A DNA stretch of 63,027 nt, counting the filler, from Choristocarpus tenellus KU-1152 (Eukaryota > Protista > Phaeophyceae), in assembly GCA_964200185.2 (NCBI GenBank). It is 13 parts of 13 records of this genome, joined end to end, with 100 filler letters (N's around TTAATTAATTAA, not from the genome) between each part and the next. Parts side by side here need not be neighbours in the genome. Positions count along the whole stretch, not along the records: positions 11,832 to 16,352 come from CAXNAD020014177.1; 12 more parts are not named here. One strand, given 5' to 3'. How positions within the stretch are numbered: the first letter of the stretch is position 1; every line of letters begins with the position of its first letter. A program made the translations under genes and the position numbers. The notes under the pieces were generated by a model. It saw only the letters and a list, made by a program, of their open reading frames with translations, did not search any database and was not told where the DNA came from. Of this stretch, positions 11,725-30,900 are shown one piece after another.

Positions 11725-12922
11725 TTGATACNNNNNNNNNNNNNNNNNNNNNNNNNNNNNNNNNNNNNNNNNNNNTTAATTAATTAANNNNNNNNNNNNN
11801 NNNNNNNNNNNNNNNNNNNNNNNNNNNNNNNGTATGCAACCAAATCACCCAAAAAATCGCGAAATGAAAAAATTGACCCCAAATGGACAGCCGCCACACC
11901 CCCCAGAAACTTTGAGCCCCTCTTCATTTCGTAATGATCCTTTGCTCAATACACACTAAGGTAGGTATCTATAGCACGTCCTTCAGAACCACTTGACTAA
12001 AGGCCCTCATTGGCTCCTTCAACAAATTGTATTATATTTCCTATTGCTTTGATGTCGGGGTTGCCTCCATCCTTCAGTACATACCCTTGGTGAGAAGTTG
12101 CTTGGAGGTATCATTCCATCTGGCCACTTTGTCACACGTTCCCCTCCTAGATAGAGTTACAATAGTTCCACAAATAATTCTACTTTAAGCATTACTAGCA
12201 CTGCTATATTCTAGGCCTGCTTTTCTAACGTCTCATACTGTTTGTTGTACTGTGAAGTGCATGGCTCCTCATTATCGTTCTTGATCAGTTGAATTTGGGG
12301 TAAAGTTGAAGAAGCGACATCTCACTTAAAATAACTTCGTTGTCCAAATCATGCTTTATGGTGGGATGTGAGAATACGTACATAATGACTAGTAGAACGG
12401 CCACCTTCCTTGTAGCTGGATATTGAAGGCTGAGGTTAACACACAGCACACCTCCAGAAAACGTGCCTCACAGAGATTTCATTCTGCCTGATTAGCTGTA
12501 GATCTCGTAAGGATGGGTGCCAAAAAATTCCTTTTTGGGAGTCGGAAGATGTAAGCATATTCTAGCCATTTAAGAATCTAAGGATATAATCAAATCTAGA
12601 TTTGAGTCTGATAAAGAATTTTTAAGCAATAATTTACTCAAGTCTAAAGTCCTTCAATATCAGTTTGAAATGATCTATATTTTAAATGTATTCGATAAAC
12701 CACTATTTCAGTATTTCCGGTTTCTAGCTTTAAAGTATTTTTTAAAATAAACGGTGATTTATTCATTACTAATATCCCAAGTTTCTAATGAAGTCTATAA
12801 TAATTTGTTAATCAAAAATGAAAAACTGCAGAAAAAAAAGGGGCAACCACGTGATAGCTTGTCTGCTCATGCAAATGCATAGCTACAACCACTTTAAACG
12901 GTGCCATAACACCTGATAGCAT

Positions 12923-13016
12923 AACGTCGATGTTATCATCTACTTCTCGGTATACTCAACATAATGCAAAGTTAGTCCTTGTTTTTCCAACTGCATTAAA
13001 TGGCGATATGCCTTAC
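12923..13016 (-). pseudogene. prfB: Decayed fragment of bacterial peptide chain release factor 2 (Rickettsiales-like)
   Basis: Minus strand reads ISPFNAVGKTRTNFALC*VYREVDDNIDV. It has the RF2 SPF motif followed by T.FA..WVY.E.DD. Most differences from rickettsial-type ISPFNAAGKRMTSFASSWVYPEIDD (recalled) are single-base changes, including TGG>TGA. Confidence 0.75.
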
Positions 13017-13084
13017 GGTTGGTTAAAACTGATATACTTGATGCTTGTAATAGATTATTTGTTATCAGCTATGTGCAATAAGAT

Positions 13085-13193
13085 TAAGTTGTTTAAAGGA
13101 TGTAAAGCTCGAACCAAAATCGTGTAAAGCAAACCAACATCTGTATCCATGAAGTACATCTATAAACTTTTTAGTAGAAATAAGCTCAACATT
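13085..13193 (-). pseudogene. Decayed fragment of a bacterial EAL-domain (c-di-GMP phosphodiesterase) gene
   Basis: Minus strand reads NVELISTKKFIDVLHGYRCWFALHDFGSSFTSFKQLNL, the EAL loop-6 region (GC.FALDDFGSGFTSF.QL) with single-base substitutions. Confidence 0.75.
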
Positions 13194-13999
13194 TCAAATC
13201 GCTGGACTCTGGGTCCAACTGAACTTGGGTTGCTTGTGCTGGTAGAAAAAATGGGAGAAGCCTGGCAGCTAGGGAAAAGATCACGACAATACAACGATCA
13301 ATATCCTTATCTTTAGTCTTATATTATCGCAGACGTGACGATTTTTTGTCTGGACTGTGTGAACTCTATGGATAGAAGGGCTGCCTGTAAGCGTTTATCC
13401 TCGCCTAATGACGAGAGACCATATACATGCCAAGCAACTGGGCAACTTTTTCCTTTGACTGTTGTTCATGGTGGAGGAATTTAGGCATCATACATATTTG
13501 GCAATAGTGCGTGAAATATAGTGTGGAAATTGTGGAAGTCTTGAGCAATTGTTGAAACTTGCCACAAGATGCAATGCTGAGATATCACAGCAAGGCAGTT
13601 TGATTTATACAAGTGGTGTTGTGTGGGTAGGCGAGTCAACATCATTCCAAGAACCAGGTGCTGATGAGAATTGTCGACAGGCTGTGGTGTGGACGCAATG
13701 TGGTAGGAGGTCTTATCATGCTGGTAGGCATATCTAAAGGAATAAAAGTCTGTTTAACAGATAGATAATAATAGTAAATTTACTAGAACACTAATCAACG
13801 CCATAAAAATCTTTGACTAGGGATGCTGCAAGTCCTACAATGAACAGTCCTCAAAGGATTAATGATCCTTAGCTAAAGATGATCATAATTGGATCGAATT
13901 CTTGGGACCTGGCCATCATAGGTTCGAGAGTCAAGCATGTGGTTTGACTGTATGAGGTGGCTACGAAACTGTGGAGCTTGTTGATGTCCAGTTAGTGCA

Positions 14000-16352
14000 C
14001 ATGGCCACCAAGATCAGCTAAGCAGTAGACGAAGAAGTCCCTACGATGTCTGAAGGGGGGGGTGAGGTTCCACCCAAAGAAGACAGCTTGGCTCTCTCAA
14101 CATGTGTGCTGGGTGTTGAGGGCCCAACAGAACCTAGTTGATGAGCATGTATGCAAGTTTCTGAAAGTGAGACGCTAAGTGTGTGGGTGATGATGCTAAG
14201 TGTGCCGGAGACCTCGGACGCAGGAATGCCACAACGTTTTAGTGAGTACCTCAGACACAAGTGGAGAGAAGATACGGACAAGGTTCTTCTTGCCTCCCTG
14301 CACGAAATCGCAGGTGGGAATGAGGGACACGAATGGGATGACATGAGAAACCGCGACGATATGTACAAGGTTGCCAGATGGGGTCAGAGTCTACGGCTTT
14401 GAACTGGCGAAACCCCAGCAGAGCAAGTTCCTATTAGTCTATGGCTTAGAACTGCAACTTGACGAACTAATTTCTTGAAGGAGGTGAGTTGAAGGAAGGC
14501 CCATAAAAGTTATGCCTGAAACTATTCTTACCACTCCAATTGTTCTTACTGTTACAGGTCTTATCCCTCTTACTTTCAAGAAGAGAGTGATGATGGTTGA
14601 GGTCATGATACAAGTGTGAAGGACTTCTACAAGTTCAAGCTGGTGAAACGATATGCCCAGAAATTCAAGAATATGAGGATATCGTTACTGTAGAAGGCCT
14701 CAAAGAGAGACTTCTTGACAGGAATCAGACAGAGAATCAGTCCAAGAAAGAGGATTCAGGAAAAAGATAAGTCAGCAGACAAGAGAAACCTGCAATTACT
14801 TGCTTCAGATGCGGCTAAAGAGCCTACAAGGAAAGGCAATGTAAATCTGTCATCCCAGTGCAAGTAGATCACAGGAAACATCCTGAGTTGTTCCTAAGCA
14901 GAGGTCACAAGCTTCTGCTGGCGGGTCCAGGGAAGTGACGACAGATATCCCGTAAACGTCCAGAATGCCCAAGTCGCACTCAAGAGTATTGGGGCCATCA
15001 AGGTCAAACGCTAAAACCTCCCACTTGATTTTGGAAAAGTGGGACAAGTCTGTCCAAGTTAGTGGCACAGAGTATGAAGATACTCACCGCTTCCTCCTGA
15101 TCCCGCCACAGGAATGCACTCTATGCCAGCTTCTGAGGCTCTTATGTCACTGCAACAAAATGAAGTGAGTGATGAAGTGAGTGATCTGACCCCAGTCGGC
15201 AACGACATGACAAATAAGAGTGCCAAAGCCCTGTTCGGCAGTCATTACAGAGGAGTTGCACACCAACGTCAAAGACACATCATGGAGCCATGGTAGTGTC
15301 TCATCCTCCCTCCCTGCCTATTGAAGTTGTCAACAAAGTATGAATCCAATACACATGACTATCCACTTAAGGCCCTTGGGGTTGAGGAACCAAGTTTTTG
15401 CAATGATACCTGGCGCCATGATATGATCATTTTTTGCAACCACACTATCTCAGAAGACCTTCAGATTGACGTACAGAATCTTTTTCAAGAGGAAACTAGA
15501 GGAATGCAGAATTTTGTATCACTGGCCTTATGTCTGGACATTAATCCATTAACAAGGTTCGTGTCAGTGTGGAAATCATGCAGGGGAGTAAGAGCATTTC
15601 TGATGACAAGACAAATGAGGAAGACTCTGGGCATTTGCACGGGGGAGTCCTTGAGCTGCTGATGGCTTCAGATGACAAACCCCTGAAATGTGGAATTGCT
15701 TGCTGTTGAGACAGTACCAGCAGATAACCTACGTGACAGACTATTCTACAGAATCTGAGAGAGATCCTAGACCGTCATGTTGAACGCATGAGAGTAGTCG
15801 TGAAAGTTGGAACTACTACTATCACGGAAAAGCTTGAACATGACTGGCTTGGTATATTTGTGGGTGACTCATGACCCTGGGGATGTTGCTGCTAAATCCA
15901 CAGTCCGTTTGAGCAGCCCTGCCATGCCAATGTGGAAGCCTGGCTATTGGGGATTTCGTTTAGTGACAGACTACAGTACTGTGAACAACAAGATAGGAGG
16001 ATATCCCTTTCCCATGCCCAACCTGGAATCCATAATGGCAAAACTTCAGGAAGCTACATTGAACCTGTTCGAAGGTTACTCTCAGTTTCCTCTGTTCTAT
16101 AACCGACGGCCTCCTCCATCGGGACTCCCCCTCCAATCGATGTAATACTAGCCTTGAGAACTTAGCACAGTTCAATAATATAGAAGACGTACTTCGAGAA
16201 GAGCGGAGTATGGTGACACGACACTTACAACACCAGTTGAAGAAGGTGGAGAGGTGGTCGAGTCTGATGATGAAGATGACAGAGGGGGGGTTAGCAGAAC
16301 CGCGCAACAGGGGGCACCATCTGGCCGAAGATAAAAAAGACTGATTCCATTG
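14000..16352 (+). mobile_element. Degenerate Ty3/Gypsy-like LTR retrotransposon internal region; RT fragment ~15900-16110
   Basis: WGFRLVTDYSTVNNKIGGYPFPMPNLESIMAKLQEA..LFEGYSQFPL matches RT motifs RL..DY..LN...P.P....L....GY.Q. Upstream frames are broken; left boundary approximate. Confidence 0.65.
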
Positions 16353-27909: not shown

Positions 27910-30900
27910 AGTGATACGTGTCAAATCCAAATAATATAACCTTTTTTGTATGATAAATTGATTTTTTTCAAAAAATATTATATTTTTGATTTATCATATC
28001 AAAAAGTGAAAAAATTCTGGATGTTTTGATACTCCAATATCGAATATGAAAATTCCTACTTTTGTTTGAAGTTTGATATTGGGTTGATATTGGGTTGATA
28101 TGGGAGGTTAAAAACGACAGAAATTCACCCCCTCTCCTTTCCATTCACCACAACAGATGATGTATGACCTTTCATGCAATGAATAATCTACCACTTACTT
28201 GATATGCGCGTACAAGAAGAGGTGGGTCAAGCGCGATGAAAAACGTGTTTTACGTGTTATTTCAGAGTATTTGTACAAATATATGGTCGAGTTGTGTCAC
28301 TCACCCGAGGCCTACAGTTTATGGTGCTGTGTCTCTTTCGGGTGACACAAGCAAGGTGGACATAATCTAAGAGAGAAAAAACAAATTGCCACATACCACT
28401 CTTCCCTGGCCCATGTAGATAGAGTACGTGTTGCCAGGAGAGAAGAACGAGCACTGAGATGCAGGTGAAGTGACCTGTGCAGGTAAATTTTCCCGCCATA
28501 CAACTTACTCAACTCTCCGAAAACCTCCTTTTCATTCACTGACTTCGATATCCTGCTCACAGTGAATTCTAACCAATTGTACTCAAACCTACTCGTTCAT
28601 TCCATCCACACGGTCTTGCAAACTACAATAACAATAGTTTCTATACCAGAGTCTACTCTTAATAATATGTTTTGTAGTTAAGAAATATATAGACCCCTCT
28701 TACCCAACTTTTGGTATTAAGGTAGATTTTTTAGGATCATTAAATGTGTGCTGTTCAAAAAACATTTTGAAGTATTGCTTGTAAATAATAAAGATATTTG
28801 GAGCAAATTTAAATTTTACTATTTTTTTTTAGTTTCTCATCATCAACAGAAAACATGTCAAAAGTTTGAAGAGACCGAAAAATCTGTACAACATGCATTT
28901 TTAGAATATCAAATATCATATTTATATCAGCCTTTTGCTCTCCAATATAATATCAAAACTCAAATCACTCTAATTATTTTTGAGATCTATGGTTAGAATG
29001 GATAAGAATGGATGTAAGGAATTGGTTGCATGTATATGTAAGTGGAGTATGATAATTTTGACAGAAAAAGGGTTAGGGTTTGTTTATGATTGGGTAATCA
29101 TTGAAGAATTTATCCAGATTTTTTATTGTAGTAGTGACAGAAGAAAGAGAGGAAAAATATTTCATGATCTATTTGAACTTCTTCCTACTCCCTAACCCTT
29201 GTGGTGGAGTATCCACACCTAGACTAGAGCCAGCACCAAGGTTGACCAACTGAAAGGCAACACAGAGTTCACCAGAGAAGCGAAGTGTCTGTGGTGATGT
29301 GATGGAATTTTTGGATGCCTAGCAAAGGGATTAACTGCATCAGGGTGCAATTGATCAAGGGCCTATGATACAGAAGACATCCAACTAAATAAACATCTGC
29401 CCGGAAACTTCAACAAAGCGGCTCCATACGGAACTTTCAGTGACAAAGCTACTTCCATTGTACTCAAGACGTTGGAGAATAGAGCGTCTCAGGCGTTCCT
29501 GAACTCTATTTCCTAGGCACAAGGATTAGCTTCCCTTTTCAGGGTCTGAGTTCCAGCTCACTCTTCAAGATTGGGTCGCCTATTGATAGCTGGGCAGGAT
29601 CATAAGCCAGGTTCGTGAACCAGCAAGAATAGAATGAGGAAGGTGTAAGCTACGGGACCCAGCCATAAGAATTTGATTGACTGGGTACGTCATTTAGAGC
29701 AGATATTTGTAAGAATTGGATAGCTTCGCTACTTGCAAATCCTAAGTGTTACATTTTTTTCCAGGATACATTTACATGTTCCAGCACTGGTAGCCATCAA
29801 TCCTCGCTTCACAACCCCTTTGCAAAATGCTCGCGCAGGGGTTGGTCATGGGAAATGGGCACAGTCAAGGAAATCAACAATATAGACCTACCTGGAGGGT
29901 GAGTAGCAAGTCTTTTGATTGGCCCGACCACGTGTTTCTCCTCTGTGTGCGCCGTCGGAAAGGCTTATCTGTACAGTGTTGCGTTTGACTAGAGTACTAC
30001 GTCTCCTCATGATACTATTTTGGTGTGGGGTGGTGATATATCACATTGAAGGAACGGTAAAGCCTGGCGGTTAACCTGATGCGCCTACATCAGACCTGAA
30101 CTCTCACGCAGTTGGCCAACCACATCTATCACGCCATACATTTGTGTCACACCATTGCCGAGCAACGATCTAAAGTATCTTCTGCCTCACCCTTGCAACG
30201 AACTACCCTCAGATGCAACATATGGCTGCAAGCGAGAGGAATGGTGCTCAAAGAACGTACAGGCACGATAATGAGGAAGAGGTATGGGCACTGGGGTGGG
30301 TGGAGGATATCTCTGGGAACTCTACCACCCCTTCCACGGGCGATTCGCAAAGTCAACTTTCTCTTCACACTCCATCAAAGAGGTGAGCTAGAGACCATTT
30401 TTTAATTTTTTCAGGTGCTTGCATAAGTCGCAGGCGGAATCTATCTGTTGGACTTTGTGCAAACAGCCGTTCCCCACTTCTCGAAATTTCGCTTGAGTGA
30501 TTGAAGTCATTGTAGCTGGGGAGGGAAGACGAGGGAGCATCCCTCACTTTTGCTTTCATCTAGGTTGAATAGGGTGTATGACTCCAAGACCCAAAACCTC
30601 CAAATGATACAAAACTTGACCTTGTTAATGTTTAGTCCCAAGTTATGTACAAGTCTGTTTTGTGTAAGTCGGTAAGTCCACAGAATATGGCATGATAAAA
30701 CGTAACAGTAGACAGCAGGCAAACTGTAGAGTCGATGGAGTGATTGGTGTAAGCAGCAGCAGCAGGATAAACTGAGTATTTGGAGGGCCATTCCTTACTG
30801 CAGGTGGAATGAGATCAACCTACCCTGCTCCGACAATTGTGTCTTGCAAGGCAGTATGTTCCAGAATTTCTATGGTTGCACTCATAGAGAGATCTTTTAT

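Follow-up and report, generated by a model that had tools for sequence, protein, structure and literature searches.

The transfer of Rickettsiales DNA to host nuclei is well documented. Wolbachia nuwts and NUMTs or NUPTs enter nuclear chromosomes by end-joining capture, often as scrambled mosaics of non-contiguous pieces, and decay neutrally afterwards. The closest precedent for the locus described here is a set of insertions in the nuclear genome of Volvox carteri, which carries rickettsial (Megaira-group) 16S, murB, ddlB, and ftsQ-like pieces (Kawafune et al. 2015, PMC4324946). In that genome, truncated pieces of genes that lie apart in the donor have been joined (16S rRNA beside murB), with host repeats interrupting them, and the interpretation given was endosymbiotic gene transfer, the symbiont having possibly been lost since (PMC4324946). 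Megaira-type bacteria occur commonly in aquatic eukaryotes, algae and ciliates among them (PMC10132079, PMC6362216). Gene transfer involving a functional operon is also described for eustigmatophyte algae and Ca. Phycorickettsia (Yurchenko et al. 2018, PMC6092422).

The window analyzed here is a stretch of 63,027 nucleotides from the Choristocarpus tenellus assembly, and the locus lies in its part at 11832-16352 (CAXNAD020014177.1), where the minus strand carries a fragment of prfB, encoding release factor 2 (RF2), at 13011..12921 and a fragment of an EAL-domain gene at 13193..13086. As in Volvox carteri, the apparent donor belongs to the Rickettsiaceae, endosymbionts of aquatic eukaryotes, and pieces of non-neighbouring genes are joined in nuclear DNA. 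The Volvox carteri pieces, however, are 400-900 bp long and 88-92% identical to their donors, with frames often intact (PMC4324946), whereas those found here are ~100 bp long and ~75-79% identical and carry a nonsense codon as well as invariant-site changes; the genes also differ, being prfB and EAL here and the dcw cluster and 16S there. The locus resembles nuwts and NUMTs as decayed DNA of an intracellular bacterium in nuclear-type DNA, with a Rickettsiaceae donor in place of Wolbachia or an organelle, and with one tiny locus seen here in comparison with their mosaics. With the eustigmatophyte case it may share DNA exchange tied to a lasting partnership of an alga with a Rickettsiales endosymbiont, although that case concerns a functional operon and another endosymbiont lineage (PMC6092422). 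Overall, we assign a probability of roughly 0.85 to the reading of 12921-13193 as a relic without function that derives from a Rickettsiaceae endosymbiont (most likely one of the Ca. Megaira type) and is integrated in the nuclear genome of a repeat-rich eukaryote. It is a small fossil of endosymbiont-to-nucleus DNA transfer, a kind of event that is already known.

The prfB and EAL-domain fragments

The prfB fragment (12921..13011, minus strand, ~91 bp or ~30 codons) extends from the SPF motif to ...VDDNIDV. Its RF2-like peptide is GISPFNAVGKTRTNFALC (12959-13012, minus), followed by a TGA codon (12956-12958) and then, in frame, by VYREVDDNIDV. The SPF motif, responsible for stop-codon recognition (the "anticodon" motif of RF2), lies at 12998-13006 and was present in its usual context (RISPF..GK/R..TSFA..VYPEVDD.ID), reading ISPFNAVGKTRTNFALC, the stop, and VYREVDDNIDV at 13009..12923. 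The GGQ peptidyl-hydrolysis motif was absent downstream of the fragment in any frame, and the RF2 frameshift site was absent from the fragment. A DNA profile of Rickettsiaceae-type prfB built from two loci (L141 and L105) matched 13011..12921 (nhmmer, E=5.3e-14, model positions 554-644 of ~1056), and a custom RF2 protein HMM searched against the six-frame translation gave 26.3 bits (E=1e-9, amino acids 171-201).

The EAL-domain (c-di-GMP phosphodiesterase) gene fragment (13086..13193, minus strand, 36 codons), detected by nhmmer, tblastx, and blastn, reads NVELISTKKFIDVLHGYRCWFALHDFGSSFTSFKQL and corresponds approximately to residues 277-312 of a Rickettsiaceae EAL protein of ~402 aa, taking in loop 6. 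The loop-6 motif DDFG(T/S)G was present in context, with FALHDFGSSFTSFKQL aligning with FALDDFGSGFTSFKQL and two invariant residues mutated. A DNA profile of 49 Rickettsiaceae EAL genes matched 13183..13086 (nhmmer, E=3.2e-19, model positions 881-978 of 1212), with no second match anywhere in 11832-16352, and a custom EAL protein HMM against the six-frame translation reached 40.5 bits (E=5.5e-14). The EITE and KIDG segments of the gene were absent in every frame around the fragment, and the catalytic EAL/EIT glutamate and the other metal ligands do not fall within the stretch of the Pfam profile that is present (positions 136-165 of 236). That Pfam match (EAL, PF00563) scored 11.6 bits, below the gathering threshold of 31.3 (E=0.18), and was the only one returned by Pfam and NCBIfam for the stop-free pieces, and the PDB match to YahA/PdeL had E=0.3. 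As these generic models are weak, the significance comes from the lineage-specific relatives. The patterns used to retrieve the loci in the lineage-specific profiles came from the window itself, so each score is partly circular, although the positions left unconstrained by the patterns still match. With E-values between 1e-9 and 3e-19, the lineage-specific DNA and protein profiles agree with the earlier note, made from the sequence by eye, in identifying the two pieces as prfB and EAL.

The layout of the two pieces was likewise as that note had described it: two minus-strand segments of ~100 bp, lying ~70 bp apart, with both peptides exactly as quoted and a measured gap of 74 bp (13012..13085, 30% GC), and only an antisense shadow in the ORF track, where the sole ORF listed is on the plus strand at 12930..13127. 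The fragments lie on the same strand in different reading frames. The GC content is 36% in the RF2 fragment, 30% in the spacer, and 31.5% in the EAL fragment, compared with 42-46% in the flanks. Beyond the RF2 fragment, a 90-bp stretch of host-like GC content (12831..12920, 44%) is followed by a very AT-rich block (12561..12830, 24.8% GC). Neither of these gave a match to Pfam or to the fetched Rickettsiaceae loci, and the AT-rich block also showed no NCBIfam match and no tandem repeats. A plus-strand frame of 58 codons is open in the block (12574-12747), and it has no relatives among 1.84 billion representative proteins; accordingly, the frame was rejected as a recognizable third gene piece. 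It was also observed that at 12574-12879 (plus, 25% GC) the frame is open for 58 and 43 codons with one TAA between, which is unusual for the composition, and that none of the searches returned a homologue of it.

Within the spacer, the 21 bp adjoining the RF2 fragment (13012-13032, plus) read PYGWLK and resemble prfB ~20 codons upstream. Taken together with the overlapping antisense of the ISPF codons, 12992-13032 (plus) reads CIK..GDMPYGWLK, in which GDMPYGWLK matches GNMPYGWLK of L105 at 8/9 amino acids (~76% nucleotide identity; nhmmer E=0.0016, tblastx E=0.44). There may thus be an inverted prfB snippet at 13012-13032 with a fold-back junction at a CATATG palindrome, although its significance is borderline by a rough count of the search space and the sequences were compared by eye. 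Another candidate, AGGNEGHEWDDMRNR (14310-14354, plus), was considered as a third RF2-like stretch and rejected as a chance resemblance: it agrees with the RF2 motif AGGTESHDWASMMMR at 8/15 residues, lies in GC-rich DNA, and has no nucleotide similarity (tblastx E=2.1, HMM -0.4 bits).

Both fragments are dead and without function now. In the RF2 fragment, 7/21 of the sites that are at least 95% invariant in 110 donor-type proteins were changed (A7V, R10T, M11R, S13N, S16L, W18stop, and P21R); the in-frame TGA (12956-12958) occupies a Trp position of the donor, and the proline-to-arginine change lies at 12947-12949. The EAL fragment carries three changes at donor-invariant sites, namely G18R (13140-13142), D24H (13122-13124), and G29S (13107-13109), two of which fall in loop 6, reading HDFGSS for the donor's DDFGSG. 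Moreover, only 98/1212 positions of the EAL profile and 91/~1056 positions of the prfB profile are covered, and neither gene extends past ~100 bp. The conserved-site and nonsense mutations previously reported here are therefore real (Trp to TGA, 7/21 RF2 sites, and three EAL sites); to judge from this decay, the transfer may be old.

Donor lineage

The degenerate DNA pattern D-F-G-x-x-F-T-S-F-K-Q-L was searched for in one genome per species across 185,579 bacterial and archaeal species and occurred at 53 loci, with ORFs encoding proteins of ~400 aa in which Pfam recognizes an EAL domain (E=1e-57 to 1e-62). Most of these loci (41/53) were labelled Rickettsia, Tisiphia, Megaira ("Megaera"), Sarmatiella, or Rickettsiaceae, and 4/53 were labelled Rickettsiales; the remaining 8/53 carried only broader labels (Alphaproteobacteria, Pseudomonadota) and nest among the rest in the tree, and no other family's name occurred among the 53. 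Amino acid identity of the EAL piece was 22-27/36 with Megaira-type members versus 17-21/36 with Rickettsia and Tisiphia, and tblastx alignments to the Megaira-type members showed 69-75% over 36 residues. The highest nucleotide identity, 78.6% over 98 bp (blastn), was with Ca. Megaira venefica (L043). At the residues not fixed by the search pattern, 16/23 matched those of L004 (TKKFIDVLH.Y.C.FAL), a locus of the Megaira-type genome MAG-45 (JAHDGL01). In a tree of 49 EAL domains and the fragment, the latter fell inside a 25-row clade (SH-aLRT 99) together with Ca. Megaira venefica and many freshwater MAGs, with L004 as its nearest row, and Rickettsia and Tisiphia formed a separate clade (support 99). 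This placement, a check proposed in the earlier note, and the sequence comparison support a Megaira-type ancestry for the EAL piece. Two lake MAGs (L005 and L010) that bear the label "Rickettsia typhi" cluster closely with Ca. Megaira venefica in the same tree; the species name assigned by the submitter looks mistaken.

For RF2, the pattern I-S-P-F-N-A-x-G-K-x-x-T-x-F-A occurred at at least 120 metagenome loci from many habitats, and for this reason the RF2 wording alone is not diagnostic. Only two of these at least 120 loci, L141 and L105, are Rickettsiaceae-type (ISPFNAAGKRMTSFASCWVYPE[IV]D..ID), and the RF2 piece shares 61-65% amino acid and 71-75% nucleotide identity with them, as against 44-58% with the other pattern loci. 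The ORF of L141 comprises the Pfam PCRF and RF-1 domains, and its best 120 homologues are 74-96% identical to it, the named organisms among them being all Rickettsiaceae, Rickettsiales, or unclassified Pseudomonadota. With many Rickettsiaceae-type RF2s, the piece is identical at 21 of 29-31 residues. The 31-residue fragment is too short for a supported tree, and a free search left it unplaced; a tree constrained to group it with Rickettsiaceae-type RF2s was 18 lnL better than the free quick tree (p-AU 0.73). These comparisons support a donor of the RF2 piece at the family level only, that is, Rickettsiaceae, with which a Megaira-type ancestry is compatible.

Taken together, a Rickettsiaceae donor of the fragments is well supported, because the EAL pattern and tree, the RF2 identity ranking, and the constrained tree all point to it. 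The family-restricted EAL pattern and the nearness of the RF2 piece to Rickettsiaceae-type RF2s thus uphold the donor named in the earlier note, whose Rickettsiaceae wordings were exactly right. A blastn search of 12540-13210 against a plasmid collection gave no match.

Nuclear setting and competing explanations

The DNA around the two fragments carries a decayed Ty3/Gypsy reverse-transcriptase relic at 15807-16145 (plus), with its core at 15912-16097, which matched the Ty3 reverse transcriptase 4ol8_A (phmmer against PDB, E=1.5e-4; query amino acids 36-97 against chain residues 100-164, with a 4-residue gap). The relic was below Pfam detection and yielded no homologues in a word-indexed protein search. 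Both contig ends are repeats: in sequencing run X1, the summed word depth was ~3.4e5 at the left end (11832-11982, very high-copy) and ~2.6e4 at the right end (16060-16352, high-copy), versus 17.8 in the unique interior. Many variant contigs and loose ends were observed at both repeat ends, as is usual where a short-read contig from a large eukaryotic genome breaks off in dispersed repeats. No long ORFs were present in the flanks; Pfam returned nothing meaningful for seven flank ORFs, no homologues were found for two flank ORFs, and Rfam and tRNA scans found nothing. From the retrotransposon relic, the repeats, and the lack of genes, the flanks look like eukaryotic nuclear DNA. No direct or inverted repeats bounding the block were found.

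The contiguity of this setting with the two fragments was assessed using assembled contigs. One 4247-bp Logan contig of run X1 spans 11878-16124 with three single-base differences, and a 1066-bp Logan contig of run X2 spans 12464-13529 with none; X1 and X2 come from a single study, and the assembly itself may have been built from one of the two. The junctions near 12540, 13020-13085, and 13200 are all bridged, since these contigs span them, and depth across the block is even with the flanks, with no joint at the block. The donor DNA is thus physically continuous with host-type DNA in contigs of two runs of one study. A third run of the same study, from another organism, contained no trace of the sequence, repeats included. 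The three differences in X1 (12764 C>T in the AT-rich block, 13398 T>C, and 15089 G>A) indicate that at least two haplotypes or individuals carry slightly different versions of the locus. Hence the nuclear-type setting proposed in the earlier note is sustained by the Ty3/Gypsy relic, the high-copy repeat ends, and the bridged junctions, the coverage check at the three junctions (two runs, one study) having revealed no depth jump.

Against this background, several other origins of the two pieces can be weighed. That non-coding, AT-rich DNA resembles two conserved motifs of bacteria by chance might be argued from the weak generic models (Pfam EAL E=0.18, PDB E=0.3) and from the shortness of the pieces, ~30-36 residues each, but this possibility is practically negligible in view of the lineage-specific profile scores (E 1e-9 to 3e-19), the 70% identity across 23 residues unused in choosing relatives, and the indication of the same bacterial family by both pieces. 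Some eukaryotes encode organellar RF2-type factors, and the RF2 piece could accordingly be the relic of a host gene for an organelle-targeted release factor, leaving the EAL piece alone as endosymbiont-derived. Such an origin would agree with the unplaced position of the RF2 fragment in the free tree and with a comparison set composed without eukaryotic RF2; it is nevertheless very unlikely, given the 74-75% nucleotide identity to Rickettsiaceae-type prfB, the lineage-typical residues AAGKRMTSFASCW...DDNIDI, the better constrained tree, and the position of this piece, AT-rich like the donor, 74 bp from a Rickettsiaceae EAL piece. Finally, reads of a living Rickettsiaceae symbiont might have been mis-joined to host reads, producing an assembly chimera or contamination. 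Symbiont reads are plausible as such, Megaira-type bacteria living inside many aquatic eukaryotes (PMC10132079, PMC6362216), and both bridging runs come from one study. However, a TGA at a conserved Trp and six further changes at invariant sites would not be seen in a gene that is essential to a living bacterium, just ~100 bp of each gene is there, and Logan contigs from two samples, one with SNPs, bridge the junctions at flank depth, leaving a mis-join highly improbable.

How the two pieces came to lie side by side is a separate matter. None of the 8-kb windows surrounding the 53 EAL genes contained prfB, nor was there an EAL gene close to prfB in L141, L105, or L174. Because the two genes lie apart in the sampled donor genomes, separate fragments joined at insertion, i.e., mosaic capture, are the simpler reading and in our judgement a rather probable one. 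The joining of non-contiguous fragments claimed in the earlier note thus holds as far as the donor genes lie apart in the sampled genomes, and the joining at insertion itself would be the inferred part. Alternatively, a single larger endosymbiont insert (at least 12 kb) may have been eroded later by deletions, an inversion, and host insertions, with the mosaic being secondary. The Megaira-type MAG-45 has two EAL paralogues, L004 and L019, and its prfB (15043-15894, minus) lies 12 kb from the EAL gene of L019 (~27983-29189, plus), so that an insert of this size could have included both, which speaks for such erosion; the AT-rich DNA around the islands (12561-12830 and 13012-13085) could also be unrecognizable donor sequence. 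Yet more than 99% of the insert would need to have been lost, and a strand flip would be needed as well, because in MAG-45 the two genes lie on opposite strands, whereas the fragments here share one. In addition, the fragment edges are sharp, with adjacent conserved parts (GGQ region, EITE, and KIDG) wholly absent, and L004, the EAL paralogue that matches best, is not on the contig that carries prfB. Erosion of one large insert is therefore an unlikely route to the present arrangement.

Possible formation of the relic and its meaning

Under mosaic capture, DNA fragments from lysed intracellular bacteria would have been captured at a chromosomal break, the captured prfB and EAL fragments would have been ligated together during end-joining repair, and the inserted fragments would then have drifted neutrally. 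This route, known from NUMTs, NUPTs, and Wolbachia nuwts, is the most likely one. If real, the fold-back junction in the spacer may be a trace of the repair mechanism by which the fragments were joined.

The relic by itself is without functional consequence. It provides one more case of bacterial-to-nuclear transfer beyond the well-studied Wolbachia-arthropod system, and it calls for caution among annotators and in contamination screens, as Rickettsiaceae-like matches in this genome can be genuine nuclear DNA. Furthermore, the locus could serve as a marker whose presence or absence in related hosts would help to date the association. As a molecular fossil, it suggests that the germline or lineage of this eukaryote once housed a Megaira-type Rickettsiaceae bacterium. 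More tentatively, and against our expectation at present, the locus could be one visible sign of many old Megaira-type insertions scattered across the genome of a host lineage for which bacterial-to-nuclear transfer is not yet known; if so, those insertions would be a record of an ancient, possibly lost, Rickettsiaceae endosymbiosis.
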